A stretch of 64,000 nucleotides of DNA, taken from positions 186,001 through 250,000 of IMG/VR virus record IMGVR_UViG_3300033145_003233. One strand, given 5' to 3'. Below are positions 5,409 through 56,448 of the stretch, piece after piece. Position 1 is the stretch's first letter. Each line of letters starts with the position of its first letter. The translations under genes and the position numbers were made by a program. The notes under the pieces are model-generated. The model was not told the DNA's origin. It did not search any database and saw nothing but the letters and a program-made list of their open reading frames with translations.

Positions 5409-5606
5409 TTAAGGATCTCTCAAATTACATTCTGCACACCATCTCTCATCTTCATCTCCATGGATGAGATTATGTGGGCATAATTTTTGTATTTCCATTA
5501 TTGCACTATAGGCTTTACACACTTCACTATATCCATGATTTTTTGCAATTAGTGCTTCTAGTTCTCTTCTAAATTTCTCTACTTTTTGTTTAATCGTTCT
5601 TGCCAC
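5409..5606 (-). CDS. Small coiled-coil plus CPH..CxxC Zn-binding protein
   Basis: IQKLCPH...WCAEC; similar layout in 11660-11851 and 30043-30393. Confidence 0.55.
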   Translation of the reverse strand: MARTIKQKVEKFRRELEALIAKNHGYSEVCKAYSAIMEIQKLCPHNLIHGDEDERWCAECNLRDP

Positions 5607-6189
5607 TTTTTTCTTCTCCCAGAATTTTTTGTATTCCTTTAATCATCACAACTATAGATACCACTGATATTAGTATTAGTGCTACGATTACGAAGATATC
5701 TATAATAGATGCTACCAGTAGTAATAGCCCCATGCCTAATATCATTGTTATTGGTTTTATTATATCAGTCATATTTCTTTTCTTTGAAGCACTTCTTTCC
5801 TTCCATTAATAGTAGTAATAGAACTCCCAGAGGTCCGAGGAGTGACCATGCTCTAATAAAGCCTCTGTCGCTATCAGTTAATGGTCCTATATAAGTTAGG
5901 GCATTTAGTCCCATTTTTTCACAAATGAAATAACTTATTATATATCCCATTATGATTATTAACCATATCATTATCATTATTATTCCCACTTCTTTTCTTT
6001 AAAACATTTCTTTCCTCTTAGTGTCAATATTGTAAAAATTGCAAGAGGTCCAAACAATGCCCATTTTTTAGCAAAGTTCTTATTTTCTTCATCAATTGGG
6101 GCGATATAGCTTAGAGCATTTAGTACCATCTTCCTTGCTATGAAATTGCTTATTACATATCCCACTATGATGACTATTAACCATACCAT
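5590..6189 (-). CDS. Three small membrane proteins; 5765-5989 and 5980-6189 are tandem paralogs
   Basis: Both paralogs share WLIxII.GY.IS.FI..KM.LNAL.YI.P...W.L.GPL...L.GKKCFKEKK. Confidence 0.7.
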
Positions 6190-11852: not shown

Positions 11853-12947
11853 TTATCCTTCCACCTCCTGAGGTATTAAATTTGCCGATTCTAAATATTT
11901 TACAATATGATCAAACACAAAATAATACCCCTTACAGAAATCTTCTCTGTCTTTGTATTCTTCTATCCCTGCTGCATATGCCAGGAAGAAACAACCTCCC
12001 TTACATATAGAGTTATATTTACAGGTAGGGCAAACTTCTCCTGTGGACTTCCCCACTTTCGCCAAGAAGGTTTTTCGTTCCTCTGAATTTAGAATATCTT
12101 CCAGGTTATTAGTAGTTAAACTACCAAAGCAGGTCTTGGGATGAGCTAGGAACTTATTACATGATGGAAAGACCATACCTTCTGGGTTAATAGCAAATAT
12201 TTGATCTTGACAATGGAAACAGGGCCTATCTACATCTATCTGCTTAAGATGTTTCTGACAGGCATTCATTATATTATCTAATGGAGTTATTCTTTCGAGA
12301 CATTGTTCTCCTCTTTCTCCCATCCACAAGTCGAACAGTTCTATCAGGAATCTACCAAACTGACCTTTCTCCTGTATCATGAGATCTGTATTCTGTTCTC
12401 CATTCCCTTGTACCACAAAGCGAGATACTGAGAAGCTGGTTATATTCTGCTGTTGTAAGAATTGATAAATTTCTTTTGCTTGATGTATATTTCTATTAGT
12501 AACTACTGTATTAACATTTACTGCCATTCCTGCTTTTTGGAGTTTCTTAATTGTTTCCATAGTATCTCTGAAGTTATTCACCACTCTTAGAGAATCATGG
12601 TTTTGTGATGGCAGGTCAAGGCTTGTTCTTATTTGAAAATTATGATCTGCAAAGTATGTCATACGGTCTTCAGACATTAATGTAAGATTAGTTTGTATTA
12701 TATTAGTGAAGTTGATATTAGTTATTTTCTTTTGTGTTTTAACTATTGTTACGAAATATGACATAGACTGTAATAGAGGTTCTCCTCCTGTCCATGAGAT
12801 AGTTACATCTCCATCGCAGAATTCAGCTATTTGGTATAGAACTTTCTCTACTGTCTCATTTGACATATATTTAGGATCATCTGTTTTAGCATAGCAATAA
12901 TCACAATCCAGATTACAGTAATCAGTTGTCCTGATAGCGAAGTTCAT
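11853..12947 (-). CDS. Radical SAM/SPASM protein, anaerobic sulfatase maturase (AtsB/anSME)-like
   Basis: CNLDCDYC, WTGGEPLL, TSLD, INPEGMVFPSC, CPTCKYNSICKGGC. Confidence 0.9.
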   Translation of the reverse strand: MNFAIRTTDYCNLDCDYCYAKTDDPKYMSNETVEKVLYQIAEFCDGDVTISWTGGEPLLQSMSYFVTIVKTQKKITNINFTNIIQTNLTLMSEDRMTYFADHNFQIRTSLDLPSQNHDSLRVVNNFRDTMETIKKLQKAGMAVNVNTVVTNRNIHQAKEIYQFLQQQNITSFSVSRFVVQGNGEQNTDLMIQEKGQFGRFLIELFDLWMGERGEQCLERITPLDNIMNACQKHLKQIDVDRPCFHCQDQIFAINPEGMVFPSCNKFLAHPKTCFGSLTTNNLEDILNSEERKTFLAKVGKSTGEVCPTCKYNSICKGGCFFLAYAAGIEEYKDREDFCKGYYFVFDHIVKYLESANLIPQEVEG

Positions 12948-18774: not shown

Positions 18775-19221
18775 TTATCCTACAATAGAGGTTTTATCTT
18801 CTGGGTCTGGCATCCACATTTTTTTAGTCACAATACACATATATCCGTCCTGATCTCCTATAGCTCTGATATATTTTTTAGGTATTTGAACCTTCACTAC
18901 CACGAACCTTGTAGTAGGATATGGGAACATCATATTTTTATATCTTGATGCCCCATATTTAGTTTTAAAGCAATGATAATAAGGAAGATATCTGAAGTCA
19001 GCTTTGCCAAAACGATAACGAAAAACTCTCATTCTTTTTCTTGTTGGGGCCTCGTTCCATCCTGTCTCAAAAGCTCCAATTTGTAGAATAGGAGCATAGT
19101 ATACTCCCTGGCCTGGAACAACATTCTTTACCCTCACTAACTTATAAGCTGTAAAAGTATCAGGAAGCTTTTCCTTCGCTTTTCTTTCTTCTTTCATTGA
19201 TAATTTTGTATCTATGCACAT
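18775..19221 (-). CDS. Divergent member of paralog family A
   Basis: MCI...FTAYKLV...YYHCF...A...IPKK.I..IG.QDG...IVTK. Confidence 0.65.
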   Translation of the reverse strand: MCIDTKLSMKEERKAKEKLPDTFTAYKLVRVKNVVPGQGVYYAPILQIGAFETGWNEAPTRKRMRVFRYRFGKADFRYLPYYHCFKTKYGASRYKNMMFPYPTTRFVVVKVQIPKKYIRAIGDQDGYMCIVTKKMWMPDPEDKTSIVG

Positions 19222-19226
19222 ATTAT

Positions 19227-19487
19227 TTATTTTCTACAAAAAGTAGTAACTATTTGTTTCCTTTTATTATCATAAACTACCCTATAAGTCTTTTCTTCGA
19301 ACTCAACGTCCCACACACCTACTCTTAATGATTGCTTTCTTACCAAAGTTGCTTTCTGATTTTGAATAAGAGCAACAAATTGTGCATTCTTATGCTTTCC
19401 AAAATTTATGCCTTGACGTTCTAGAAACCTATTTCTAACATGAATCGCCTGACAACGTTTCTTACTCTTCTTTGCCTTTTTTCTCAA
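19227..19487 (-). CDS. Small basic protein, possible RelE/BECR-like RNase fold
   Basis: H..NRF.ER helix followed by VWDV....YRVVYD....IVT strands. Confidence 0.4.
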   Translation of the reverse strand: MRKKAKKSKKRCQAIHVRNRFLERQGINFGKHKNAQFVALIQNQKATLVRKQSLRVGVWDVEFEEKTYRVVYDNKRKQIVTTFCRK

Positions 19488-19523
19488 TAACTTTCTAACT
19501 ACTTTACTCCTACTTTAATCTAA

Positions 19524-19669
19524 TCGGCGCGGGTGGATTCGAACACACCGTCCTTCTAGTTGTTCCACACAGGCTTAACTAGTATTTCCTTGTCTCTCTT
19601 GATGCCCAAGTTGCAACTTAGGCGAGAGTGACTGTGTGGCTAACTGCTCTACCGCTGAGCTACGCGCCG
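19524..19669 (-). ncRNA. tRNA-like RNA with the anticodon loop replaced by an ~80-nt multi-stem hairpin
   Basis: Acceptor CGGCGCG/CGCGCCG plus A73; U8 A9; D-arm GCTC-AGCGGTA-GAGC; T-loop GTTCGAATC. Extended arm has stems CCACACAG/CTGTGTGG, TCTC/GAGA and GCCTAAG/CTTGGGC. No CCA encoded. Confidence 0.8.
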
Positions 19670-19683
19670 TCTTAACTTTTTAA

Positions 19684-20136
19684 TTACTGATAATTTTCAT
19701 CTTGAATAATTCTATATCTATGAAAATATTCTAATGGTCTTAGCATATGATCTTCTCTATCCCAGAAGCCCCAATTTCTTCTTTTGGGCCAAAATAATAA
19801 CAACGTCCAAGCTCCTGCTTTTGGTATATCTAAATAATGTCTATCTTCTGCTTTAGCTCTCCATACTTCCCATGCTTTAACTTCTATCTCTTTTTTCCCA
19901 TCAGGGCTATCCTTATCAGGCACTACATTTTTATATCCACCTTTTAATATACAAGAGATAAGGTCAGAACCATGATCGTGAAAAAATCTTCTGTCATCTG
20001 ATTTCAACCAATGATGCAATCTAATAGAGAAACCAAAGAATAAGAATGTCCATCTATAGAGGTAAGGGCATTCAGGTTTACCTAATGCCTCTCTCCATCT
20101 TATTTGGAATTTCTTAAATTTTCTATAAGGTTTCAT
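19684..20136 (-). CDS. Cupin-like phage protein
   Basis: RLHHW..SDD..FFHDH...S.ILKGGY...RH...WTLL. Confidence 0.6.
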   Translation of the reverse strand: MKPYRKFKKFQIRWREALGKPECPYLYRWTFLFFGFSIRLHHWLKSDDRRFFHDHGSDLISCILKGGYKNVVPDKDSPDGKKEIEVKAWEVWRAKAEDRHYLDIPKAGAWTLLLFWPKRRNWGFWDREDHMLRPLEYFHRYRIIQDENYQ

Positions 20137-24351: not shown

Positions 24352-24802
24352 AAACTTCTACTATCCGTTCTTCTTTCATCTCTGAACCGTCTCTTTTCGT
24401 TGACTGTGTAACAACAATCATTTTAGATAGTCCTGTTTCCTGTGGTGTCCAATACAGATAAGAAAAGACAGATCCTCCATCTCCCTCTTCCACACCTATA
24501 GATATTCCTGCTGGTGGATCTTTGATGGACATGGTAGGAGCAGAACCATCTGAGACAAAAGATGGAGATAAAAGAATCTTGTAAGTAATCCCTACTTTCA
24601 GATTCAGATTTCCATTTTCTATCTGTGCTACTTGGGCATTATCTTGTATCTCAGCCTCTTCTACTGCCTGCCGGATTTTGTTACAGGCAGGAGCTAATAT
24701 CGCTGCCAGCATAGCCACTATAGCTATCAGTACCATCAACTCAATTAATGTAAAACCTTTCTTCTTCATAACTTGTCCCTTTCTAATTTTCTTTCCAAGC
24801 AA
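24341..24802 (-). CDS. Prepilin-type N-terminal cleavage/methylation protein with Ig-like domain (paralog)
   Basis: KKKGFTLIELMVLIAIVAMLAAILAPA; LYWTPQETG. Confidence 0.85.
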   Translation of the reverse strand: MLGKKIRKGQVMKKKGFTLIELMVLIAIVAMLAAILAPACNKIRQAVEEAEIQDNAQVAQIENGNLNLKVGITYKILLSPSFVSDGSAPTMSIKDPPAGISIGVEEGDGGSVFSYLYWTPQETGLSKMIVVTQSTKRDGSEMKEERIVEVFVH

Positions 24803-25805
24803 AAAACTTTCCTGATTTCCATGGTTCTAATCTTCCTACCCGACATTTAAAACCACAACTTTCTAACACATCCGTTATAACCTCTGGACGATGATTCTCT
24901 AGCCTCGTATGATATTCTCCTGCTATTTTTCTAACAGAAGTAGAAAGAAAATCTTTGTCCCAATTTTCAAATATCTCATATTCAGAACCTTCTGCATTAA
25001 TTTTTACGTAATCGAGATGATCTATGTTTTGTTCTTCTAAAAATTCATTAATATTAATAACCGATATCTCTTCTGTTCCAAGAGGTTCGAAATCAGAATG
25101 CGAAAAGAATGTAGCGCAACAGGATGCCCAGTAAACATTCATTGGTTTCTTTTCTGTAGTATCTCCTATAGCGCAATTAAACGGCACTATAGCTCTACCA
25201 TAAGAACTATCTATTCCTATATTTTTCAACAGATAATGATAAGTAGAGGGAACTGCTTCAACAGCATAAATTTTAGATGCCTCACGCAAAGATGCTAGAA
25301 GACTGAAAAAGCCATAGTGTGCCCCTATATCTAAACAGACATCTCCCTTTTCGATTGGGCAGGGATCTCCTGTGTAAGAATTATCGAATAGAACTAGTTC
25401 ATAAGTAAGCCAAGCTGGATCATCTGGAGCAGTATATAATTCATGAGTTATTATTTCATATTCTTTTTGTTTAGGACCATTATGTTCTTTATATATTACT
25501 TCGTTATTTTGATCTTCAATTTTTACTACTATATTATTAAGGTATCTGATATATATACGTATCTCTTGAAAACCTGATTTGTCAAATTCTATTGCTTGTT
25601 TAATAAGAAGAATGTTTGTGGTCTCATCTCTTAGACAAATATGGCACATATCTTTATCATCAGAGGATGCAAGAAAATAGAACATAGGAGTTACATCTTC
25701 TCTTAAAAAAGGAAAACATAAAAAAACTACTTTTGTGGTAGTTCCATTCTCCAAATTTTCTTGGATAGACTTAGTACTTCCATTAATTTTCTTACAACTT
25801 ATCAT
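24783..25805 (-). CDS. FkbM-family methyltransferase with N-terminal extension
   Basis: CLDIGAHYGFFS, AVEA.P, VKINAEGSEYEI. Confidence 0.85.
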   Translation of the reverse strand: MISCKKINGSTKSIQENLENGTTTKVVFLCFPFLREDVTPMFYFLASSDDKDMCHICLRDETTNILLIKQAIEFDKSGFQEIRIYIRYLNNIVVKIEDQNNEVIYKEHNGPKQKEYEIITHELYTAPDDPAWLTYELVLFDNSYTGDPCPIEKGDVCLDIGAHYGFFSLLASLREASKIYAVEAVPSTYHYLLKNIGIDSSYGRAIVPFNCAIGDTTEKKPMNVYWASCCATFFSHSDFEPLGTEEISVININEFLEEQNIDHLDYVKINAEGSEYEIFENWDKDFLSTSVRKIAGEYHTRLENHRPEVITDVLESCGFKCRVGRLEPWKSGKFFAWKEN

Positions 25806-32794: not shown

Positions 32795-34138
32795 TTAAAT
32801 TTCATCCTCTATCTGTCTCAATATTTGTTCGGCAATAGCTTTAAGAGCATTATAGCCACCACCACCCTTTGAAATTTTGGCTTGGTTTTCCCAGAGCCGG
32901 GGTTGGGTAAGAGTTTTACTCTTCTTAAGAGAGTTATAAACATTCTCGATATTCCAGTCTATATCCCTATTGAAGAATTTGCTATACATGCGACCTAAAA
33001 GATATGACATACCAGCGATACCCAGAGAACGATGCATGATGTAATTGTCAGGATTTCTCCATATCTTAGGGCAAGCCCTTTTTAATGCTGACCAAAAAAC
33101 TGTCGTGATACGACTCAAATCATCTGCCTTCACTCCCTGAATAGTCCCTTCGCTCCAATACTCAGCTTGCATCCACTTAACAAGAGGTTTCATTCCAGTT
33201 ATAAAACTTGAAGAGCGAGAGCTTATTTTTTTACCCTTTGGAGTATCAGGCAATTCAACCAGATTATGCCATGGGCTAATCCGATCATCACACATTGCGG
33301 TAACTGCTCCAGCAATAACAGCTTTTGTCACATCATCCCACGTCTGATTAGGACCAATGACAAGATGTTTGTTGTTATTAAAATCGACAATAGCGCTATG
33401 AGCAGTTGATACTCTTGTCTGTTTTCTATTGTGATTTAAAAAGAGACCCTCTTCCTCTGCATAAGAAAGTTGAGAGACACAGAAAGGAACAGTTAAATTG
33501 CTATAATTGATACCTCCGTCTGTAGCCATACTTGCCAAATGATAATGCAACAAAGCGATATAACCGAAACGCCGTGTTTGACCATCATAAGTCCAAAGAG
33601 TGCAATCAGCTGGAATCCTCAATATGCCCACCACCGAAGAAAGTTTACGTTTGGGAGCATCTGCCATCATATCCTTAAGGGGGATAAAAGTAACCTTCTT
33701 ATCCCGGTCATTGACCATCAGTTCTCCGAAACAGATATTCGACTCACCCTGCATAAACGTTCCAAATGCTCTACCGTTCTTCTCAGTGTTATTCCGTTGA
33801 TATCCCGGTTCTCCATCTTGATGATGATTATAATTAGGAACCTGTACGATAGAAGCTAACTGAGCCACAGTTAACTCTCCCGAATAATAGTAAATACCTT
33901 TCTGACATTTCATAACTACCGGGATTTCGAAATAAGATTGTTTGTCATTCTTATACTCATCCGGAACAATAGAAACATTGTCAGATTTAGCTATCCTAGC
34001 CATGGCTCCTTTCTGAGAAGATGTATGCATACTAGCTGATGTTTTTTGAGCTTGTGTTCTCCTTTTCTTTCCCTTCCTCTTCCTTGCTCTAGCTTCTTGT
34101 TTTTCTTTCGATCTTGACATCTTAGGACTTCCTTTCAA
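32795..34138 (-). CDS. DGQHR-domain (DndB/ParB-superfamily) protein with basic N-terminal tail
   Basis: LWTYDGQTRRFG; EGLFLNHNRKQTRVS. Confidence 0.75.
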   Translation of the reverse strand: MKGSPKMSRSKEKQEARARKRKGKKRRTQAQKTSASMHTSSQKGAMARIAKSDNVSIVPDEYKNDKQSYFEIPVVMKCQKGIYYYSGELTVAQLASIVQVPNYNHHQDGEPGYQRNNTEKNGRAFGTFMQGESNICFGELMVNDRDKKVTFIPLKDMMADAPKRKLSSVVGILRIPADCTLWTYDGQTRRFGYIALLHYHLASMATDGGINYSNLTVPFCVSQLSYAEEEGLFLNHNRKQTRVSTAHSAIVDFNNNKHLVIGPNQTWDDVTKAVIAGAVTAMCDDRISPWHNLVELPDTPKGKKISSRSSSFITGMKPLVKWMQAEYWSEGTIQGVKADDLSRITTVFWSALKRACPKIWRNPDNYIMHRSLGIAGMSYLLGRMYSKFFNRDIDWNIENVYNSLKKSKTLTQPRLWENQAKISKGGGGYNALKAIAEQILRQIEDEI

Positions 34139-35428: not shown

Positions 35429-36511
35429 TTATTCCACAATTTCTGCAATTGAATTTACTTCTCTTTGGAACTTAGCATAATCGTCCCCGCCAAGAGCTTC
35501 CCTAGTATAAGAGATGTATTTAGAACTTATATCTATTCCCACATATTTTCTATGATAATGTTTGCAAACATGACCTGTCGTTCCTGTTCCATTGAAAGGA
35601 TCGAGAACTAAACACTCTTGAGCTAGGCCGTCCAAGCAATCACAGCCGGACTCCCATTCTAAGATATTACTTTTCTTTCTTACCCATGGAGTTTTACATT
35701 GAGAGCAACATCCCCCTGAAGAAGTTCCAGCCATAAGACATGGTTTAATTAAATCTATAGGATATATAGCAAAATGTTTTATCTTACTATTAGCAGTAGC
35801 TACTTCCCAAATATCTCTCTTATTACGTTTTATATGATCTGATAATTTTTCATCATCAGAAAGACCTTCCTTTAAATCATCTATTATTTTTCTCATCTTC
35901 TCATATGTCTTATCCTGAGATTTTCCACTAATAGCATAATTATCATCTTGATAATCTTTTCTTTTTTTTACTCTATTCTTAGAATATGCTCGTCTAATAG
36001 AGATTTCTTTCTGAGGTTCTTTAATGGCTTCATAATCGTAGAAGTACTTTTTATTTTTCGAGAAAAGAAACAAATGCTCATACGATTTTGAAGGTCTATT
36101 TTTAACGCTCTCAGGCATAGGATTCGTTTTCTGCCATATGACATCACAACGCAAATACCATCCAGCATCCCTCATAGCAAATGCCACCATCCACGGAATA
36201 CCTAGTAAATCTTGTGGTTTAAGAGAAGATCCCTTAATAGCTTTCTTACAATAACCATCTCCTATATTGAGCCAGAAGGTTCCATCTTTCCTTAATGTTC
36301 TCCTAACCTCTTCTGAGATTGCTACCAGATTTGCGACATATTCTTCAGGAGTTTCCTCTTGTCCCAACTGCTCCTTTTCTCCGTAATCTCTCTGGTCCCA
36401 ATAGGGAGGACTAGTAATAGCACAGTGGAAAGTATTATCATCGAAGTCCCTTAAGGATGTTAAAGTATCCCCTACTATTAGCTTGAATTTAAAAATCTGT
36501 TCATCACTCAT
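35429..36511 (-). CDS. Beta-class DNA methyltransferase (N4-C/N6-A)
   Basis: TSPPYW (motif IV) precedes VLDPFNGTGTT (motif I); Cys-rich insert. Confidence 0.92.
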   Translation of the reverse strand: MSDEQIFKFKLIVGDTLTSLRDFDDNTFHCAITSPPYWDQRDYGEKEQLGQEETPEEYVANLVAISEEVRRTLRKDGTFWLNIGDGYCKKAIKGSSLKPQDLLGIPWMVAFAMRDAGWYLRCDVIWQKTNPMPESVKNRPSKSYEHLFLFSKNKKYFYDYEAIKEPQKEISIRRAYSKNRVKKRKDYQDDNYAISGKSQDKTYEKMRKIIDDLKEGLSDDEKLSDHIKRNKRDIWEVATANSKIKHFAIYPIDLIKPCLMAGTSSGGCCSQCKTPWVRKKSNILEWESGCDCLDGLAQECLVLDPFNGTGTTGHVCKHYHRKYVGIDISSKYISYTREALGGDDYAKFQREVNSIAEIVE

Positions 36512-39597: not shown

Positions 39598-40812
39598 TTA
39601 CAAATCATCAGCAAATCTAGTAGCCGCAGATGATGGTAAATATCCTAGTAAAACATTTGCCTTTGGTCTGAAAGCAGTAAACATTTTCCTACGAGAAAGT
39701 GAACTAAAATCATCAAGTGCTGCATGAAACTTATTTTTCCTCATTAAGAAAATATATTTTATTGACTCATTAAACTTCCTTTTACCAAAAGGTTGAGGAC
39801 GTTGAGCTAGATAAAGTCCTAACTCTTTATCAGACATATGTTCAGTAAGGTCATACATATCCTCTACCTCAGAAACAAATGACTCCAACTTTTGAGAAAG
39901 AATCCAAACGATAGTATCGAAGTCTTTTTCTAGTTCCTCAGGAAGTTCCTTTTTCACTTCGTCCAAATCGTCACCATTCAATAATAAATCCCAGATAGCT
40001 AATGGAGTTACCTTTGAAATCAGTTTATGGATACGAACATACTCTGCACCTTTTACCTTTATACGAACACCGCTCTCAAAACGGATAACATATCCTTCTT
40101 CATTTTGAGTTAGAGTCTCAGCCTTTTCCACAATAGATGTCATGTCGTCAAAATCATGCTTAGGCACAAATGCTACTCTTAACTTCTTGCTTGCCTCTAC
40201 TTGAAGATCTTCATAAGAGTACTCTACACCTTGAGGATCAAAAATAGCCAACAACACTAACCCTGAGAAATTGTAATTTACAACTATTTTATTCTCTGGA
40301 TAAATTATCTCGAACAGATAAGTGTTCTTTTTCCAAGCTGACCGAAGGACAACATGATTGCTGATTATCCATTCCTCAGCCCACTTAGCTTGTTCAGATG
40401 TAAAAGAGCCACACGTAGCAACTCTCCATGCTCCCTCGTAGTAGAACATGATTCCAAGAGAACCATCCATTTTTTCAGTAACAGTGAATTCTGATTCTAT
40501 AATAGATGCAGAACCTGATTCTATTTCACCGAAATTAAAAAACTTCATGAAAGGAGAAGCAACTACCACCTTATTTTTAAGGTCCAGAATTAGACCTCTT
40601 GACATTAGAGTAAAGACATTCCAGTTTCTTCCAGCAACACAGTCAATAGAATACTTGAACAAAGCCAAATGTGGAAAATCTGGATGGTAATTAACATTGA
40701 TATTTCCTCTGTTAATTTCCTCGAACAGTCCATCAACAAGGGCTTGAAACTCCATTACTCTAGATGGATGTTTCTTTCCATGTTTTAATAATATTTCCAT
40801 TACGTCATTCAT
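39598..40812 (-). CDS. RNA ligase, T4 Rnl1-like
   Basis: SPFMKFFN, TEKMDGSLG (motif I), EGYVIRF (motif IV), KVKGAEY (motif V). Confidence 0.9.
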   Translation of the reverse strand: MNDVMEILLKHGKKHPSRVMEFQALVDGLFEEINRGNINVNYHPDFPHLALFKYSIDCVAGRNWNVFTLMSRGLILDLKNKVVVASPFMKFFNFGEIESGSASIIESEFTVTEKMDGSLGIMFYYEGAWRVATCGSFTSEQAKWAEEWIISNHVVLRSAWKKNTYLFEIIYPENKIVVNYNFSGLVLLAIFDPQGVEYSYEDLQVEASKKLRVAFVPKHDFDDMTSIVEKAETLTQNEEGYVIRFESGVRIKVKGAEYVRIHKLISKVTPLAIWDLLLNGDDLDEVKKELPEELEKDFDTIVWILSQKLESFVSEVEDMYDLTEHMSDKELGLYLAQRPQPFGKRKFNESIKYIFLMRKNKFHAALDDFSSLSRRKMFTAFRPKANVLLGYLPSSAATRFADDL

Positions 40813-42068: not shown

Positions 42069-43823
42069 TTACAATTTTCCCGCAGCGAACTCAGAAAGAA
42101 TACGAGGCACATTAGAATCTAGCCCTGCTATGTCCATCATTCCTGCATCACTAGGATCAGCAATAGTGAACTTATTTGCTGCAAAAGCCATAACAACAAG
42201 TTTCGCATTCTTGTTAAACTTCTTTCTGTATCTCTTCAATGCCTCAAACGGATGCGCATATCCAGTATTTGTCTCATTATCTGTTAAAACAACAAACACA
42301 TCGACATCCATTTCGTTATCCATGGCATATTGCATAGGCAAAGAACAATCCGTACTACTAAACGGAAGATTAGAAGTCCTTCTGATAACAGTATCAAGAC
42401 TATCTTTCGCTGTGATATTCAACGGAACGAAAGTACGTGAGAAACCCATCATCGCATAATTCTTTTCCGTCCTAGCAATAGTCATAGCCACAACTGATGC
42501 TGCTTCACGAGGAACTATTCCGCTTGGATGATCAAAAGAACCCCAACCACTAGAAGCCATTGAAGCACTAACATCAATTCCTAACAAGAATTTCTTTCCT
42601 GTTGGTTCAACATAGTTGAACGCCTTATAAAAAGCCTCTTCCAAAGCATCTTTAATAGCAGACACAGGACTCCATGAAGTTCTCATACCACTACCCTTGC
42701 TATAAGTCTTAAGGGCCAACATAATCGTCATTGGATGGAGACGACTCTTCTTCAATGCTTCCTCATTTGTAATCTTACCAATAGCCAATGAAGTCTCATC
42801 ACTCAATGACTTCAAAAGTCCTGAAGAAGTCATTTGACCCAAGTTACGAATTAAAGCACCTATAGGCATCTTAGGAAGCAATGCTTTTTGTACCTTTTTT
42901 TCATTCCTGAATTGAGGAGGAATAGACTCTCTTGTTAGACCATAAGCTGTAACCAACTTCACCACTTCATTAATGTCAGTTGAGTTCATACTTTGCTCAT
43001 GTGCCCAAATATACTTCAGAGTTCCATCTTTCAATGCCTCTAGTTCAGAAACTAAAAGACCAGGACTTTCTTGAGTTTTTCCAGAAGCCTCAGAATCTTT
43101 TGCTCTCTTTACAAGAACCTCTTCGCTTGTTACTCCATGTGTCGCATAATGGAAAATAGTAGCATGCTCATCAGAAGGAGTAGTCAATGCCCTACCATTT
43201 CTAGCAGGCTTTCCATCAGCAGTAGGGCGAGAGATTCTGCACATACGAAGCAGATCCCCATGAGTCAACCTTTGCCCACCAACTGAACGACCAGGGTACT
43301 TGCAAATTTGATATGCTAATTTAACAGCATCTTTTTCAGTGTACCATCTTCCCATTGCTCTAAGCATACCCTTAGCCTTATGCCCTTCTTTCAATGAAAG
43401 AACAGCAAGCACCCACTCAAAAAGAGCAGTTGAAAAACGAGCAACCTTAGGCATCATCTTATTAGCGTATGCTCTTGTCTTGTCGTCTCCGTGAACACTG
43501 CAAACTGCCAATGCAAAAATAGCAGGAGCATTCTTAACAGCACGACCTTCATCGCTAATTTGAACGATAGTATCTACCGTACGCTTACTATCTAATTTCA
43601 GACAACGCAAAATGACATCATAGTTTTCCATAGTCAGTTCGCGAGCTGAAGCATAATAAGTGCCATTCTCATTCCCTATAATTAAGAAACGATTTAGCCT
43701 CGTCCAGTCATCAGCCGTAAACACAAAACCACCTGAACGGTTTTCGACTTGCGTACTCTTAGCTCTTTTTCTTTGGTTAGTTTGAGGGTTTGCTACAATA
43801 TTAGCATAATTTTTCTCAGCCAT
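42069..43823 (-). CDS. rsr: Ro60/Rsr TROVE-domain RNA-binding protein (TROVE plus vWA)
   Basis: GGFVF..DDW.RL.RFLIIG...GTYY; LLGIDVSASM (MIDAS); TDCSLPM; FVVLTDNET; DPSDAGMMDIAGLD. Confidence 0.95.
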   Translation of the reverse strand: MAEKNYANIVANPQTNQRKRAKSTQVENRSGGFVFTADDWTRLNRFLIIGNENGTYYASARELTMENYDVILRCLKLDSKRTVDTIVQISDEGRAVKNAPAIFALAVCSVHGDDKTRAYANKMMPKVARFSTALFEWVLAVLSLKEGHKAKGMLRAMGRWYTEKDAVKLAYQICKYPGRSVGGQRLTHGDLLRMCRISRPTADGKPARNGRALTTPSDEHATIFHYATHGVTSEEVLVKRAKDSEASGKTQESPGLLVSELEALKDGTLKYIWAHEQSMNSTDINEVVKLVTAYGLTRESIPPQFRNEKKVQKALLPKMPIGALIRNLGQMTSSGLLKSLSDETSLAIGKITNEEALKKSRLHPMTIMLALKTYSKGSGMRTSWSPVSAIKDALEEAFYKAFNYVEPTGKKFLLGIDVSASMASSGWGSFDHPSGIVPREAASVVAMTIARTEKNYAMMGFSRTFVPLNITAKDSLDTVIRRTSNLPFSSTDCSLPMQYAMDNEMDVDVFVVLTDNETNTGYAHPFEALKRYRKKFNKNAKLVVMAFAANKFTIADPSDAGMMDIAGLDSNVPRILSEFAAGKL

Positions 43824-43887
43824 TTCTTTCTCCTTTTTCTTATCAACCTAATTTAATTTTAGATATATCGATATCAACACATTAGCA

Positions 43888-43915
43888 ATTATACAATTTT
43901 CTACTTTTTTGTCAA
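43888..43915 (-). promoter_or_regulatory. sigma70 promoter of the Ro60 gene, overlapped by an inverted repeat (43898-43922)
   Basis: TTGACA-16-TATAAT; TTTCTACTT-N7-AAGTAGAAA. Confidence 0.75.
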
Positions 43916-44069: not shown

Positions 44070-45719
44070 TTACTCTCTTTTTCCAAATCCGAAAGCAGAA
44101 CTAGTTTCTCCAACTCCGAATTTCTCCATAGTTTCTATGATCTCATCGGCCCATTTAATATCAATTCTTTTGACTTTTCTTCGACTACTGATATGCTTAA
44201 GATTCAAGCTATTAATAAATTCCTGAGCCTCAGCCCCTGTCCATCCATCAGTTTTAGAAACAATATGATCCAATGTCTTTTTATTTGTTTTCCATTGTTT
44301 TAATCTGTCTTTAAACATCCTTTGCCTAAGTTCTTCACAAAGAGCAGGCACTTCCACTACTCTATCAAAACGACCTGGCCTGTTCTTCAAGGCACTCTCA
44401 ATAATTCTTAATCTATTAGTCGTCCCTATGGTAACAGAATTTTTAATAGAATTCACTCCATCAAGAATATTCATCAATGCACCGAGAGAAATCACATCTC
44501 CACCCTTCTCTCTATCTTGACTAAACAAGTCTAAATCCTCTAAGATTATGATACAAGGAGACAAGAAATCTGCTAGCTTATATAAGGCCTTAATAGAAGT
44601 TATAGCTTTATAATTATTCTCTGCTAATATCTCAGGAGTAATCCATATAACAGTATAATCAGGAACTAGATTACAAATGATATTACCTATAGTGGTCTTA
44701 CCAGTCCCTGCTCTCCCGTGTAAAATTATTCCTCTTTTAGTTATTCCGCAAGCATTGTATTTTTTAACATTTTTAACAAAACCAAAAATCTCTAAATCAA
44801 AGAGATCTTTAATACTCTCTGGATAATAATAATTGTCCCATGTATATGAATCTTTGATCTCTACCTCTGAGAAAGATGCTGATATCATATTAACATCTTT
44901 TAATTTTGCTCCTCTTAGACAATTATGTTTTTTAGCAAACTCTTGCAAATCATTAATAATATTTTTTGAGCAACCCGTATCAGTACTAAAACATGTTATA
45001 GAAGCTCCTCCTCGTTCCCCATCAAAATACAAGAAAAAAGCTACATTTTCTTGTTTCTTCCCCTTCACCTTTTCAAAATATAAAAATCCCGTAGTGGTAA
45101 ATGTGGTTTCTTTACCTTTAACACTCCATGGATTCTTTTCTGGAGGAATAGAATTACCATGATCATCAAAATTCAATTCTCCTGCAAAGCTAAAACCCTC
45201 TTCCTCCATAAATTTAACCATACACTCCATTAAAATCAAAGTGATAAGAGGATGTGCTTGATAGGGATGATTTTTAATATCATTAACACTTGTAACTCCT
45301 AGAAATCTACAAAGAATTCTATAATCAATAGAACGAATAAAATCTATTTTAATCTGATCTGCAAATTTAACCGCTACTAACTCTTTATATCTTTGTTCTG
45401 CTATATCCTCTGCTATAGATTGAAGAGGACGTGGAACACCTCCACTTATAGTCGCTGTTTGAGTCTCAAACATGCGATCATCGCACGGAACAGGCATACA
45501 TTCATCACCATCATCATCAAAATTTAACTCTTCAATTACTTGTTTTACTATTTCTGTTGAAGTTGAAGCACGATGTACCGGGCTTTTTACAATAGATTGA
45601 TCTTTAATCATACGAGTATTACCTTCCATTAATATAAGTTTTTCATAATCTTCCTCCCGGATATCAAAAAATCTACACCAGAATGCTTTTAATTCTCTTT
45701 GTACCTTATTTCTTTTCAC
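44070..45719 (-). CDS. Classical-clade AAA+ ATPase with a long N-terminal domain
   Basis: GRAGTGKT (Walker A), IIILEDLD (Walker B), TTNR...ALKNRPGRFDR (SRH). Confidence 0.92.
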   Translation of the reverse strand: MKRNKVQRELKAFWCRFFDIREEDYEKLILMEGNTRMIKDQSIVKSPVHRASTSTEIVKQVIEELNFDDDGDECMPVPCDDRMFETQTATISGGVPRPLQSIAEDIAEQRYKELVAVKFADQIKIDFIRSIDYRILCRFLGVTSVNDIKNHPYQAHPLITLILMECMVKFMEEEGFSFAGELNFDDHGNSIPPEKNPWSVKGKETTFTTTGFLYFEKVKGKKQENVAFFLYFDGERGGASITCFSTDTGCSKNIINDLQEFAKKHNCLRGAKLKDVNMISASFSEVEIKDSYTWDNYYYPESIKDLFDLEIFGFVKNVKKYNACGITKRGIILHGRAGTGKTTIGNIICNLVPDYTVIWITPEILAENNYKAITSIKALYKLADFLSPCIIILEDLDLFSQDREKGGDVISLGALMNILDGVNSIKNSVTIGTTNRLRIIESALKNRPGRFDRVVEVPALCEELRQRMFKDRLKQWKTNKKTLDHIVSKTDGWTGAEAQEFINSLNLKHISSRRKVKRIDIKWADEIIETMEKFGVGETSSAFGFGKRE

Positions 45720-52820: not shown

Positions 52821-54128
52821 CTAATTATCTAATGATTTTCTAAAAATATTACTCCATGCCTTCCGAGACAAATAATCATAAAATCCTGACAAGGGAAGCC
52901 TTACCAGAATAAATAGAAAATATCTCAGTATGGGAAATTCAACAACCAACATAGCTAAAGCATACAATCTACCTATTAATTTGTAATCAGAGGTATAGGG
53001 ATAATTGATTTTAAACCTATTAAAAGTAGAACTTAATATAGAAGATTTAACATTGTCATCAAAAAATGCCGCTCCTGGGTATGGCTGAAAAACAGTAAAT
53101 TTACCAACATCAGGTTTTAATTTAAGAATCATATCAATAGTTTCTAGTGATTCTTTGTACGTCTCAGAAGGAGATCCGAACATAGCATATGTATGAAACT
53201 TAATCCCACACTTTTTAACTAACTCTATTTTCTTATAAATAAAATCATTCGTTAAGTTCTTACCTAATATCGAATTACGTATATGCTCATTACCACTTTC
53301 TACACCTATCCCTATTTGATAACATCCAGTTTCTACTAATTTTGCTAACAACTCCTCCGTGATAATTTCAAATCTAAGATGACACCAATATGGCAAATCT
53401 ACTTCTTCTGAATATCTATCCAAGAATTCTGAAGTCCACTTTTTGTTGGCCCCAAATGTTTCATCAAAAAATTCTATCCTTTTAGCATTCCCTTTGTAGG
53501 TATTTATTTCTTCAAAAATATCATCCATGTCCCTGAGTCTATAATATTTATTATTAAAAAGACTGTTTATTCCCTTGTTTGTACAAAAATTACAATTGTA
53601 GGGACATCCTCTAGCACAAGATATATATAAAGAATCTTCTAAAACAGTTTTATAATTATTATAAATTCTTCTGGAAGGGATTGGTATCTCATTACTTGGC
53701 AATAATTCTCCCAACTCATTCCTTTGCCCTTTTGTCCATAAAGATGGAATATTAAATGTGGATATATTTTCATCAATATTATTTAATAAAGTTAAAAGGG
53801 GTTTCTCTCCTTCTCCCATACAAATCATATCAATATTCTCATCAAAAACAATGTCAGGGTACGATGTGGGATGAGGCCCACCTACAACAGTCACAATCTT
53901 ATTATTTATACCTTTAACTTTTTTAACCATGTCCAAAAGCCAGCAATGATTAAGTGTAAGAGAATAAATCCCTATTACATGAGGATCAAAAGACTGAATC
54001 TTATAAGGCAACTTCCCATGACCGTCCATAAAAACATCACATTCATGTTTATCTTCGATATAAGAAGTCAATGTCATAATACTCAACCATCTTATACTAT
54101 CATTCTGAAGGAATAGAATCCTTGCCAT
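52821..54128 (-). CDS. Cobalamin-binding (class B) radical SAM protein
   Basis: VVGGPHPT, GEGE, RGCPYNCNFC, GVESG, YAMFGSPSET. Confidence 0.92.
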   Translation of the reverse strand: MARILFLQNDSIRWLSIMTLTSYIEDKHECDVFMDGHGKLPYKIQSFDPHVIGIYSLTLNHCWLLDMVKKVKGINNKIVTVVGGPHPTSYPDIVFDENIDMICMGEGEKPLLTLLNNIDENISTFNIPSLWTKGQRNELGELLPSNEIPIPSRRIYNNYKTVLEDSLYISCARGCPYNCNFCTNKGINSLFNNKYYRLRDMDDIFEEINTYKGNAKRIEFFDETFGANKKWTSEFLDRYSEEVDLPYWCHLRFEIITEELLAKLVETGCYQIGIGVESGNEHIRNSILGKNLTNDFIYKKIELVKKCGIKFHTYAMFGSPSETYKESLETIDMILKLKPDVGKFTVFQPYPGAAFFDDNVKSSILSSTFNRFKINYPYTSDYKLIGRLYALAMLVVEFPILRYFLFILVRLPLSGFYDYLSRKAWSNIFRKSLDN

Positions 54129-55332: not shown

Positions 55333-56448
55333 TTATTCGTCAGAGAAGTCTACTACTTCCCCCTTCGCCTCTTTTTTATTCTTCATAAGAAGATAATCTT
55401 CATTAAGCATTTTTAGAATAGCCCTACCGCAAGACCATTCTTCTCTTTCTTTTAGAGAGCAAATAACTATACCTTCTCTAATATGGTCAGCACCATTTCT
55501 TTTAGCGAGAAAAGAAGGGCCTGTAGAAAGGCCTTTCATCAAATTCATATTAAATGACCCCTCGATAATAAGAGGAACCATAGGGACAGAAAAAGCCTTA
55601 CATAGATTATTAAATAGTTCCCAATCAACATACTTACCATCTATCTTCAATGAAAATGCCACAAAGTTAAGAGAATTAGGTTTTCCATAATGCATAGATT
55701 TATGTCCACCTCTTACTCTTCCATACACTTCTCCGTATAGAGTAGCACTTTTCTTGCAGCCATAACGAGGATCATTACCTAAAGCCGAAAGAAGATATTT
55801 AACTGACTCAAGAGTAAAGGGATACCAGTAGCTATTAGAAAGCATTTCTTCATCTGTAGGCATTTTTCTCTTAACCCTATGAGAACCACCTTTCCACTCT
55901 AGTTCTCCTTCCTCAGATTTGAAGAAGCCTATCCTACAATTAGTCCCATCTATTTTTTCTGTAACACAAACTTCCTCTCCCTTTTCAAAAATATCAGGGA
56001 AATTTCTGATATTCTCTATGTCTGTATATTTAGTAAACAGAGGGTCATCGGGAGCAGCATCTCCAGCCATAGCTCTTAGAGGTGGTTCGTATTTAGTAAT
56101 TCCATAATGTTCAGCTACATCTGTCCCTACTTCCCAATTTTCTTCGTTATTTATAATCAGTCCGTAAGACATCGCCCCACGAAGTCTGGCACACCTAACG
56201 CGATTGTGAAGTTTACCTCCGAGATAGTTACCCACTCCAAGTCTCTCTACAAGTTCGAGAGGAAGCACAGCATCAACAGGGATATAAACAACAATATCTC
56301 CTACTTTATAATCTCCCTTGCCAACTATGCACTCCCATCCCTTGACAACGGCAATTTCTAGCCTGTCAGCATTCTCGTGCGAGAGAACTTCTTTTATATC
56401 ACAAACTTCTACTATTAAACTACTGCTCATCCTTCTTCCTTTCTTCAT
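55333..56448 (-). CDS. RNA ligase, DRB0094 family
   Basis: N-terminal H.NADRLE...GW...V.KG; TEKIDGTN, REGIVI, KMLNEDYL. Confidence 0.9.
   Translation of the reverse strand: MKKGRRMSSSLIVEVCDIKEVLSHENADRLEIAVVKGWECIVGKGDYKVGDIVVYIPVDAVLPLELVERLGVGNYLGGKLHNRVRCARLRGAMSYGLIINNEENWEVGTDVAEHYGITKYEPPLRAMAGDAAPDDPLFTKYTDIENIRNFPDIFEKGEEVCVTEKIDGTNCRIGFFKSEEGELEWKGGSHRVKRKMPTDEEMLSNSYWYPFTLESVKYLLSALGNDPRYGCKKSATLYGEVYGRVRGGHKSMHYGKPNSLNFVAFSLKIDGKYVDWELFNNLCKAFSVPMVPLIIEGSFNMNLMKGLSTGPSFLAKRNGADHIREGIVICSLKEREEWSCGRAILKMLNEDYLLMKNKKEAKGEVVDFSDE

Follow-up and report, generated by a model that had tools for sequence, protein, structure and literature searches.

A family of tRNA-shaped RNAs in huge phages that is linked to a predicted cupin gene

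Natural mimics of tRNA are few, and each of them has taught something: tmRNA, the tRNA-like ends of viral genomes, and the bacterial Y RNA YrlA, which is a partner of the protein Ro60 and is found in phages that can encode Ro60 (Chen et al. 2014, PMC4201824; Wang et al. 2018, bioRxiv 10.1101/312249). In YrlA, the D and T arms form a tRNA-like elbow while a long helix replaces the anticodon loop, but the molecule is circularly permuted: the order is T arm, closed acceptor-like stem-loop, D arm, and the RNA ends lie in the long stem. YrlA RNAs carry the motif GNCGAAN0-1G, a putative Ro60 contact near the 5' end, and are encoded within about 4 kb of the Ro60 gene on the same strand, which is the published search criterion (PMC4201824). 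In the tRNA-like domain of tmRNA, an acceptor stem with G3.U70 and a T arm are retained, the D stem is missing, and the anticodon arm is replaced by a long helix leading to further domains, namely pseudoknots and a tag reading frame. Outside the tRNA mimics, the phi29-type packaging RNA (pRNA), the kissing-loop dimerisation site of HIV-1, and the self-assembling phage-associated RNAs ROOL and GOLLD provide examples of RNA-RNA contacts between copies.

Here we analyzed a stretch of 64,000 nucleotides, referred to as the window, from the IMG/VR virus record IMGVR_UViG_3300033145_003233 (positions 186,001 to 250,000). The original prediction, made from the sequence alone, had proposed that positions 19524-19669 encode a tRNA mimic with ordinary tRNA ends but without an anticodon loop, and had interpreted it as a candidate non-permuted Y RNA in a Ro60-encoding phage, as an anticodon-nuclease decoy, or as a tRNA with an unusual small intron. 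The element itself is real: it lies on the minus strand, its coordinates are exact, and it is not an artefact. The interpretation is only partly supported, as the tRNA mimicry holds while the link to Ro60 and Y RNA and the small-intron reading do not find support, and the decoy idea is neither supported nor excluded. The parts of the element, read 19669→19524 (RNA position p = 19670 minus window coordinate), and of its neighboring gene are as follows:

19524..19669, minus strand: the whole tRNA-like RNA, 146 nt.
19663..19669, minus strand: 5' strand of the 7-bp acceptor stem, CGGCGCG, which pairs with CGCGCCG at 19525-19531; A73 is at 19524.
19646..19660, minus strand: D arm, GCUC-AGCGGUA-GAGC.
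19640..19644, minus strand: anticodon-stem equivalent (P0), 5' strand GUUAG, which pairs with CUAG(A) at 19555-19559.
19634..19639, minus strand: helix P1, 5' strand CCACAC, which pairs with GUGUGG at 19565-19570.
19592..19632, minus strand: hairpin A, with the lower stem GUC[AC]UCUC/GAGAGAC, the upper stem GCCUAAG/CUUGGGC (with a U.G pair), and as its apex the 12-nt perfect palindrome AAGUUGCAACUU at 19608-19619.
19571..19590, minus strand: hairpin B, with the stem AGG/CCU and a loop carrying the palindrome ACUAGU at 19578-19583.
19560..19564, minus strand: five unpaired bases, AACAA, on the 3' side between P1 and the anticodon stem.
19532..19549, minus strand: T arm, GGUG[U]G-UUCGAAU-CCACC, with the bulged U at 19545.
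19684..20136, minus strand: the linked gene, encoding a 150-aa protein with a predicted cupin fold, whose stop codon is 14 nt upstream of the RNA.

Direct reading of the sequence confirmed a complete tRNA body, in which about 80 nt take the place of the anticodon loop. The acceptor stem has C1-G72, the variable loop is AGGAC, and the bases required for the tertiary contacts are present: U8, A9, A14, G15/C48, G18 and G19 in the D loop, U54, U55, C56, A58, and G53-C61. Despite this, ARAGORN in default mode and Rfam, including RF00005, both at the gathering threshold and at E ≤ 10, called nothing here, and the tmRNA search of ARAGORN was likewise without result. ARAGORN with introns allowed did find the cloverleaf, but only by forcing a 52-nt intron and a 26-nt variable arm. 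The minimum-free-energy fold has z = -2.9 against shuffled sequences.

That the structure is more than chance follows from its homologues. A covariance model (R1), built from 16 members, finds 24 close relatives at 79-140 bits, and more than 30 more distant ones were found in huge-phage contigs. The window sequence scores 128.2 bits (E about 1e-28), which is partly circular as it was itself in the seed alignment; members outside the seed score 79-127 bits. The original prediction had named missing conservation or covariation of the arm as grounds for its rejection. On the 24 sequences, however, 91.8% of cells pair and 39 of 44 base pairs show compensatory changes, with a covariation score of 0.64 against 0.24 for shuffled alignments (0 of 500 shuffles reach the observed value) and at most 0.13 when the pairing partners are slid. 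Moreover, G.U pairs on the RNA strand argue for selection at the RNA level. Within the acceptor stem, C1-G72 and G3-C70 are invariant in 24/24 sequences, R2-Y71 and C4-G69 are nearly so, and pairs 5-7 covary freely. The D arm is 99% paired across the family; in P0, 4 of 5 pairs show compensatory changes and 96.7% of cells pair; in P1, 7/7 pairs and in the T arm 5/5 pairs have compensatory changes. Most family members have a bulge at the same position of the T arm, and the same bulged arm occurs in ordinary phage tRNA-Met genes. Of the unpaired linker, A107 and C108 are invariant in the 16-sequence alignment, and similar (U/A)ACA(N) linkers occur in divergent members.

Two details of the predicted fold had to be corrected. 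The last two pairs of the helix CCACACAG/CUGUGUGG compete with better-conserved pairs that open a three-way junction, and what had been taken for a 3'-side loop of about 19 nt is a third, short hairpin (hairpin B) with a conserved CUAG-type loop. Both stems of hairpin A as well as the stem of hairpin B covary. The two apical loops of the extra arm are perfect palindromes in the window, and relatives swap them for other palindromes: the apex of hairpin A is UUCGAA in 18 relatives, UUGCAA in 3 and UCUAGA in 1, while the loop variants of hairpin B are UCUAGA, UUCUAGAA, ACUAGU, GCUAGU, AUCGAU, UCGCGA and CAUG. In these changes the palindrome is kept: UUCGAA becomes UUGCAA at three separate places in the tree, although the tree is poorly resolved and the number of independent loop changes is thus uncertain; UCUAGA becomes ACUAGU or GCUAGU, the latter being self-complementary only through G.U, or is replaced outright by AUCGAU, UCGCGA or CAUG. 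In the core family, 36/50 hairpin loops of the insert carry a palindrome of ≥6 nt at their center (dinucleotide shuffles: mean 5.9, maximum 11), and in divergent members with unrelated inserts the count is 20/48 (shuffles: mean 4.3, maximum 8), whereas in Ro60-adjacent tRNA-like RNAs, which serve as a natural comparator, it is 3/55. A few members break the rule: locus L175 (L numbers designate individual retrieved loci) has UUCGGAA, and the two giant CcrColossus elements have no palindromic loops. A perfect palindrome at a hairpin tip can also arise from DNA-level processes; nevertheless, the pattern suggests loop-to-loop self-pairing.

We considered several alternative readings of these loops. 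Hairpin B of many relatives reads UUCUAGA, a perfect anticodon loop with CUA, but an amber suppressor was rejected because the window has A at the U33 position and because L165, L167 and L174/L176 replace CUAG with AUCGAU, UCGCGA and CAUG. The idea that hairpin A is a T-loop mimic (G-UUCGAAA-C) is weakened by the three members with UUGCAA, which breaks C56 but keeps the palindrome. A restriction-site decoy was rejected since TTGCAA and ACTAGT are not avoided in the window (26 observed against 23 expected, and 11 against 10, respectively). No second copy of the insert was found in the window.

We next examined the genomic context. The constant partner of the RNA is the 150-aa predicted cupin gene: the RNA lies within 1.5 kb of it on the same strand in 37 of 45 distinct loci with full flanks and in 59 loci in all, with a median gap of about 47 nt, and can be on either side of the gene. 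Three of the eight apparent exceptions have a long or odd tRNA-like element just upstream of the gene (L137, L235, L236), and in L122 the RNA is 2.6 kb away. No other neighbor is conserved, as the next most conserved neighboring protein is present in only 10/80 loci, and 5/5 hits in genome collections also have the RNA beside the cupin. Gene adjacency does not prove a physical or enzymatic link, and the cupin often lies inside phage tRNA gene clusters, which could explain part of the adjacency. In the window, a scan found neither a promoter nor a terminator belonging to the RNA itself and no promoter-like site between it and the gene, so the two are probably co-transcribed. Relatives, by contrast, have TTGACA/TATAAT promoters a few nt upstream and T-runs downstream, and CCA is encoded after A73 in the cultured phage Paraglaciecola Antarctic GD virus 1, whose family member is at MW805361.1, about 113999-114122, and in the CcrColossus elements. 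The protein has no Pfam, NCBIfam or PDB sequence match and hits phrog_4786. Its residues H41, H42, S46, D47, D48, H53, D54, H55 and H100 are invariant, AlphaFold2 gives a cupin barrel at pLDDT 84, and a fold search returned only generic cupins, with thiol and ergothioneine dioxygenases among them.

Other searches for relatives and descriptions of the RNA gave little. Among GenBank phages there was no DNA match to the RNA or its surroundings, in near or distant mode. A gapped D-arm/T-arm pattern search of IMG/VR retrieved mostly pairs of adjacent tRNAs and otherwise only the window itself plus the unrelated insert-bearing tRNAs L111 and L106, and the exact 17-mer of the T arm retrieved only the window itself and ordinary tRNAs. 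The downstream ORF 18775-19221 has no relatives. Full-text literature searches found no description of this RNA, and the CcrColossus genome paper reports no RNA other than tRNAs (PMC3556154).

Taken together, the analysis shows a transcribed-strand, structure-constrained tRNA-like RNA that belongs to a family confined to large phages and not contained in Rfam 15. This family keeps a tRNA body with a fixed acceptor end (C1-G72, R2-Y71, G3-C70, C4-G69, A73), which among the phage tRNAs compared is closest to tRNA-Pro, and replaces the anticodon loop with a variable module, which in the subfamily of the window is a three-way junction with two hairpins. It is genetically coupled to one small predicted cupin gene and to nothing else. 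Everything beyond this is inferred from sequence and from tRNA biology or is hypothetical, including expression, the RNA ends, CCA addition, dimerisation and any contact with the cupin. By inference, the RNA is released from the cupin transcript or, in relatives, from the transcript of its own sigma-70 promoter, by RNase P and a 3' tRNA-end processing nuclease (RNase Z or exonuclease trimming), receives or keeps CCA, and cannot decode because it has no anticodon loop. Our best guess, held with moderate confidence only, is the hypothesis that two or more copies pair loop to loop in kissing complexes because the two apical loops are self-complementary, which would give a two-fold symmetric tRNA-like dimer or chain. 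In this view, that assembly would be the working form and would act together with the cupin protein as its substrate, scaffold or regulator, and not with Ro60.

A further-reaching reading, which we consider unlikely but which the evidence leaves possible, is that the assembly, as a symmetric dimer or polymer of a new class of self-assembling tRNA-like RNA, would be recognized or chemically acted on by the dimer-prone, thiol-dioxygenase-like cupin encoded next to it, for example as a dedicated carrier whose CCA end or thiolated base is the substrate of the enzyme. This would give huge phages a tRNA-based function outside translation.

Of the competing explanations, a decoy or sponge survives best, although it remains doubtful. 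Here, the RNA would offer its acceptor end and elbow to host tRNA-targeting defense enzymes or tRNA-binding proteins, while the variable arm removes the cleavable anticodon loop. In line with this, the acceptor identity and elbow are conserved whereas the anticodon region is hypervariable in length and sequence, even between near-identical bodies (L197 against L209); the phage carries RNA-repair genes, namely two RNA ligases (39598-40812 and 55333-56448) and Ro60; and in Paraglaciecola Antarctic GD virus 1 the RNA lies next to an RNA ligase and a phosphatase. However, a decoy explains neither the covarying three-way junction, nor the self-complementary loops, nor the tight linkage to the cupin, and no nuclease target is identified.

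An intron-containing tRNA gene, in which the insert is cut out and the halves are joined by the phage RNA ligases to give a decoding tRNA, is improbable. ARAGORN with introns allowed proposes tRNA-Val(cac), the same body exists with and without an insert (L197/L209), and the five unpaired bases AACAA resemble the 3' half of an anticodon loop. Yet a 7-nt anticodon loop with U33 and a purine at 37 is not present directly, and no single excision yields a 7-nt loop with U33: the candidates are CCAACAA, CCACCAA and the like, and every way of joining the two flanks gives C33 or G33. The 26-nt variable arm required by the ARAGORN model contradicts the covarying P0/P1 helices. No Rfam ribozyme or intron family, including group I, reaches E ≤ 10, nor does one appear in the longer relatives; the predicted fold shows no bulge-helix-bulge, and the junction has a 5-nt bulge on one strand only. 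Insert-free relatives also have non-canonical loops of 5-10 nt, and the insert itself is under structural selection with conserved loops.

The originally proposed non-permuted Y RNA, whose extended arm would bind the phage Ro60 while the tRNA-like part recruits a partner, is similarly improbable. It is true that Ro60 is encoded in the same window on the same strand (42069-43823, minus strand), that no other tRNA-like element or Y RNA candidate lies near it (a search for Y RNA near Ro60 in the window gave no Rfam hit at E ≤ 5, and no other T-arm-like hairpin exists anywhere in the window), and that non-permuted tRNA-like RNAs do exist right next to Ro60 in other phages, which makes the architecture plausible in principle. 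However, the RNA is 22.4 kb from Ro60, and a regular-expression scan of 19000 to 20000 on both strands found no GNCGAAN0-1G motif, to which the prediction had seen a partial match; the UUCGAA loops of relatives do not fit it either, and GGRCCGA is also absent from the RNA. Its homologues sit next to a cupin gene in about 60 distinct loci, and of the 23 IMG/VR contigs that carry the cupin, only that of the window is among the best 80 (those most like the window's Ro60) of 283 Ro60-encoding contigs, a comparison made without reading whole contigs. The closest Ro60 relatives have no such RNA within 4-10 kb, with no hit in the Ro60 loci L238-L242 and L154-L156.

Finally, a DNA-level element without RNA function, i.e., a MITE-like palindromic insertion or protein-binding site in a decayed tRNA gene, would fit the perfect palindromes and the inserts that vary in position (D loop or anticodon loop) and are gained or lost between close relatives, but is very unlikely as compensatory changes and G.U pairs fit one strand only, the tRNA body stays intact with all its tertiary-contact bases, the insert has no other copy in the window, and the variant GCUAGU works only with G.U.

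The family would be another tRNA mimic, widespread in huge phages from sediments, peat, lakes and rumen, with strong covariation support, an unusual rule by which both loops of the added arm stay self-complementary whatever their sequence, and a single, highly conserved partner gene. As it is missed by tRNA finders and by Rfam, it is unannotated even in Paraglaciecola Antarctic GD virus 1, a cultured phage in which it is directly accessible at the bench. The analysis also corrects a tempting but unsupported link to Ro60 and, as a by-product, points to a separate set of non-permuted tRNA-like RNAs that do sit beside phage Ro60 genes.

Compared with YrlA, the RNA shares the D and T arms and the replacement of the anticodon loop, but its order is acceptor-D-insert-T-acceptor with open tRNA ends and A73, and it tracks a cupin gene instead of Ro60. 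The Ro60-adjacent non-permuted RNAs in IMG/VR phages (for example L284:5856-6241 and L254:3105-3380) likewise are phage-encoded and have ordinary tRNA ends and a 50-70-nt insert between the D and T arms; they carry, however, a CUUGYCC...GGRCCGA hairpin and a GGUUAUC box, often a normal anticodon stem-loop, acceptor stems that are not fixed, and palindromic loops at chance level. In contrast to tmRNA, G3-C70 is invariant and the D arm is complete. With pRNA, the HIV-1 dimerisation site, ROOL and GOLLD, the RNA has in common a three-way junction that presents two hairpin loops, which in the RNA studied here would only putatively mediate contacts between copies, or self-complementary loop sequences that are swapped for other self-complementary ones; but pRNA loops pair left with right rather than each with itself, pRNA has no tRNA body, ROOL and GOLLD are 500-800 nt, and none of these families matched in the Rfam search. 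As in engineered tRNA-scaffold RNAs, which carry inserts in the anticodon stem, and in viral tRNA-like structures, the tRNA body is used for processing and stability, here by inference, while the functional part replaces or extends the anticodon arm; the present RNA, however, is natural, phage-encoded and conserved with its own partner gene, and it is not at a genome 3' end.

The RNA occupies exactly 19524-19669, as originally predicted, but it reads on the minus strand, from 19669 to 19524, and direct reading of this strand resolves the following parts, in 5' to 3' order except that the two strands of the acceptor stem are named together:
7-bp acceptor stem CGGCGCG/CGCGCCG with C1-G72, followed at its 3' end by A73
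U8 and A9
D arm GCUC-AGCGGUA-GAGC
short anticodon-type stem GUUAG/CUAG, with about 80 nt lying between its two strands
5-nt variable loop AGGAC
T arm GGUG[U]G-UUCGAAU-CCACC with one bulged U

The bases needed for the tRNA elbow are all in place (A14, G15/C48, G18 G19, U54 U55 C56, A58). The bulge in the T arm does not by itself mark a non-tRNA, since the same unusual arm GGUG[U]G-UUCGAAU-CCACC also occurs in otherwise ordinary phage tRNA-Met(CAU) genes (at about 3810-3890 of L148 and about 8135-8215 of L152; L-numbers denote the loci fetched for comparison). Standard detectors see nothing at this site: ARAGORN found no tRNA or tmRNA in the whole window, and Rfam returned nothing at gathering scores in the window and nothing relevant at E<=10 around the site. 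With introns allowed, ARAGORN recovers the cloverleaf, but only as tRNA-Val(cac) with a 52-nt intron and a 26-nt variable arm, a model that is contradicted by the comparative data presented below. The single-sequence fold is modestly better than that of shuffled sequences (z = -2.9).

The window is part of a 547,943-bp viral contig (IMGVR_UViG_3300033145_003233), and all of its genes run on the minus strand at about 35% G+C. The genes relevant to the RNA and to its proposed link with Ro60 are:
19684-20136, minus strand, ORF whose stop codon lies 14 nt before the RNA
39598-40812, minus strand, Rnl1-like RNA ligase
42069-43823, minus strand, Ro60 (TROVE plus Ro60 vWA domains)
about 43880-43910, clear TTGACA-17-TATAAT promoter just upstream of Ro60
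44070-45719, minus strand, AAA ATPase
55333-56448, minus strand, second RNA ligase, with an OB fold

The two ligases, Ro60 and the AAA ATPase form an RNA-repair-type set, and no Y RNA candidate lies next to this Ro60. For the tRNA-like RNA itself, no promoter-like or terminator-like site of its own was found. Pfam matches on five other ORFs (11853-12947, 52821-54128, 32795-34138, 35429-36511 and 24783-25805) comprise a radical SAM/SPASM protein, a B12-binding radical SAM protein, a DndB-like protein, an N6/N4 DNA methylase and an FkbM-type methyltransferase, a rich set of modification enzymes. Moreover, some 6-bp palindromes are strongly avoided across the whole window (CTGCAG 0 observed against 6.0 expected, GAGCTC 0 against 4.7, GGATCC 1 against 6.2, CAGCTG 1 against 5.7, and GTTAAC 4 against 11.9), and CTAG and TGCA are also low, which looks like restriction-site avoidance.

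To find relatives, we first searched GenBank phages at the DNA level, which yielded nothing, and scanned IMG/VR with exact patterns, which recovered only the window's own contig among true relatives. The relatives were found through the ORF upstream of the RNA, whose own relatives in IMG/VR (23 loci) and in metagenomes (118 hits, of which 80 were kept) very often have a long tRNA-like element beside them. An alignment of 16 sequences gave an RNAalifold consensus in which 28 of 34 pairs show compensatory changes, and a covariance model built from this alignment (R1) identified three groups: 24 close members at 79-140 bits, with the window at 128 bits; a further set of more divergent long forms of 124-221 nt; and, at the same genomic spot, short forms of 72-80 nt whose "anticodon" loops have 5-10 nt.

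We then wrote a structure of 44 pairs on the alignment of the 24 close members and counted the pairs. In this alignment 91.8% of cells pair and 39 of 44 pairs show changes on both sides; the covariation score is 0.639, whereas shuffling of the partners gives 0.238, with none of 500 shuffles reaching the observed value, and sliding of the partners by 1-3 columns gives at most 0.13. Every helix is supported, namely the acceptor, the D stem, the anticodon-type stem P0, helix P1, the two stems of hairpin A, the stem of hairpin B, and the T stem. The model refines the structure originally drawn for this RNA in three respects. First, P0 stacks directly on P1 on the 5' side, while on the 3' side five bases stay unpaired (AACAA, with A107 and C108 invariant in the alignment of 16 sequences). 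Second, the last two pairs of the 8-bp helix in the original prediction are less conserved (18/24 and 16/24) than the alternative pairs that open a three-way junction (G-C in 22/24; A-U or G-U in 24/24). Third, what had been read as a 3'-side loop of about 19 nt is a third hairpin.

The acceptor end is fixed within the family: C1-G72 and G3-C70 are invariant, R2-Y71 and C4-G69 are nearly invariant, and A73 is constant, whereas pairs 5-7 change freely. This pattern is typical of an end that is read by a protein. Among 1,396 ordinary tRNAs called in all the fetched loci, tRNA-Pro is on average the closest to the body, although this is a resemblance only. CCA is not encoded in the window, but it is encoded after A73 in the copy of a cultured phage described below.

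A feature that we had not expected is the self-complementarity of the loops. In the window, hairpin A ends in the 12-nt perfect palindrome AAGUUGCAACUU, and hairpin B carries ACUAGU. The variants found in relatives are as follows.

Loop sequences of hairpins A and B in the window and its relatives
Loop A: UUCGAA (18 members); UUGCAA (window, L176, L195); UCUAGA (L177)
Loop B: UCUAGA or UUCUAGAA (15); ACUAGU (3); GCUAGU (L162; self-complementary only through G.U); AUCGAU (L165); UCGCGA (L167); CAUG (L174, L176)

The divergent long forms have unrelated inserts, yet they again carry palindromes at their hairpin tips, examples being UACGUA, AGUGGCCACU, GUUGCAAC, UUGAUCAA, GGUUAACC and CGAUGGCCAUCG. 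To judge how often such loops would arise by chance, we counted the hairpin loops of the insert that have a perfect palindrome of 6 nt or more at the centre and compared these counts with dinucleotide shuffles, with the tRNA-like RNAs found beside Ro60 in other phages serving as a natural comparator.

Insert hairpin loops with a central perfect palindrome of 6 nt or more
Core family: 36 of 50 observed; shuffles, mean 5.9, maximum 11 of 40 runs
Divergent forms: 20 of 48 observed; shuffles, mean 4.3, maximum 8
Ro60-adjacent tRNA-like RNAs: 3 of 55 observed; shuffles, mean 6.0, maximum 11

On a weakly resolved tree UUGCAA appears at three separate places, in one of which it is sister to a UUCGAA sequence with 92/83 support. 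A hairpin gains nothing in stability from a self-complementary loop, and the simplest reading is therefore that two copies would pair with each other through kissing loops, or that such a symmetric duplex would be recognized, both of which are inferred from sequence alone.

We next examined what accompanies the RNA in the genome. Among 45 distinct cupin loci, that is, loci of the upstream ORF and its relatives, with at least 700 nt on both sides, 37 have a family RNA on the same strand within 1.5 kb. In all, 59 distinct loci do, with a median gap of about 47 nt and with the RNA downstream of the gene in 34 loci and upstream in 25. Of the eight apparent exceptions, L122 has the RNA 2.6 kb away, while L137, L235 and L236 have odd or long tRNA-like elements directly upstream that fall below our thresholds. 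No other protein family is conserved next to the cupin, the best being present in 10 of 80 loci. In 185,579 species genomes the cupin appears only five times, each time on a metagenome-assembled contig, and all five have the RNA beside it. The protein itself has 150 aa, is 46-87% identical across these loci, and shows invariant H41 H42 S46 D47 D48 H53 D54 H55 H100. It has no Pfam, NCBIfam or PDB sequence match but matches phrog_4786, whose label is "cysteine dioxygenase"; its predicted fold is a cupin barrel (pLDDT 84), the structural neighbours of which are generic cupins, among them ergothioneine dioxygenase.

Further features were seen at individual cupin loci. In several relatives (L160 at about 670-755, L161, L165 and L175) a hydrophobic ORF of about 30 aa, for example MLAIGTVSIVAGVVGLVCIAAIIILKRREQ, sits between a sigma-70 promoter and the tRNA-like RNA; this ORF is absent from the window. 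In L137 (2556-2708; also in L212 and L213) two tandem tRNAs with anticodon CUA, that is, amber suppressors, lie just upstream of the odd short tRNA-like element and the cupin gene, which hints at stop-codon recoding in that phage, and the cupin ORF of L204 has one in-frame stop. In the cupin locus L222 a 140-nt stretch (5503-5642) passes the Rfam threshold for tmRNA (49.6 bits against 47), which is unusually short for a tmRNA.

Distant cupin homologues occur in 32 GenBank phage records. In the cultured phage Paraglaciecola Antarctic GD virus 1 (150.8 kb), an unannotated 124-nt family member (L317:2689-2812; MW805361.1, about 113999-114122) scores 55.5 bits and has C1...A73 followed by an encoded CCA, as well as a CUAG loop. 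It lies about 180 nt upstream of the gene annotated "cysteine dioxygenase", in a gap after an RNA ligase and a phosphatase. In Caulobacter phage CcrColossus, two unannotated giant elements of 273 and 246 nt (L318:1407-1679 and L318:1695-1940; NC_019406.1, about 241461-241994) each have C1...A73-CCA, normal D and T arms and an insert of about 200 nt, without a group I intron match, and lie upstream of a methyltransferase gene and the cupin. Because they score weakly and have no palindromic loops, we count them only as possible distant kin. The original genome paper reported no RNA other than tRNAs (PMC3556154).

Taken together, the observation that a tRNA mimic lies at this position is confirmed and is far from chance, whereas its interpretation as a Ro60-associated or Y-RNA-like RNA is not supported. 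What the analysis shows is a member of an undescribed, covariation-supported family of phage tRNA mimics tied to a cupin gene; that the RNA pairs with itself and acts in association with the cupin is inferred. With the demonstrated parts included, we consider this self-pairing, cupin-associated reading somewhat more likely than not. A decoy role comes next but is unlikely, while splicing and Ro60 binding are each improbable, and a DNA-level element is likewise improbable.

Several lines of evidence speak against an intron-bearing tRNA. Joining the two flanks of the insert in any register gives loops such as CCAACAA or CCACCAA, never one with U33. No group I or other ribozyme family in Rfam matches the window RNA or its longer relatives, and the junction has a bulge on one strand only rather than a bulge-helix-bulge. 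The insert is, moreover, under structural selection. L197 and L209 share one body with and without a 62-nt insert, yet the insert-free loop is GGGUACG, which is not canonical, and neither form predicts the other by simple excision.

As far as can be told, Ro60 is not the partner either. The three closest Ro60 loci have no tRNA, no Rfam hit and no R1 hit within 10 kb, and the five closest in a second search have none within 4 kb. An alignment-based search found 283 IMG/VR contigs with Ro60 relatives; among the best 80 of these, and judged from the lists of contigs rather than from whole contigs, only the window's own contig is also one of the 23 cupin contigs. In the comparison with YrlA, the published search criterion was a location within 4 kb of Ro60 on the same strand, and YrlA carries GNCGAAN0-1G near its 5' end (PMC4201824) and is circularly permuted, with a closed acceptor stem (bioRxiv 10.1101/312249). 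The window RNA lies 22.4 kb from Ro60 and shows neither this motif nor the permuted order with a closed acceptor stem. Many of the more distant Ro60 loci, by contrast, do carry tRNA-like RNAs of 118-147 nt directly beside the phage Ro60 gene on the same strand, often in tandem:
L284: 5856-5975, 5983-6108 and 6115-6241
L254: 3105-3231 and 3253-3380
L307: 6319-6446 and 6537-6665
L269: 3307-3428 and 3438-3567
L289: 270-389 and 399-528
about 15 further Ro60 loci

These RNAs have ordinary, non-permuted tRNA ends, a CUUGYCC...GGRCCGA hairpin that resembles the GGUCCGA Ro60 contact, a GGUUAUC box, and often a normal anticodon stem-loop; Rfam calls two of them plain tRNA, and they may be an unrecognized non-permuted class of Y RNA. 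The architecture imagined in the original prediction therefore seems to exist, but in a different RNA family from the one in this window.
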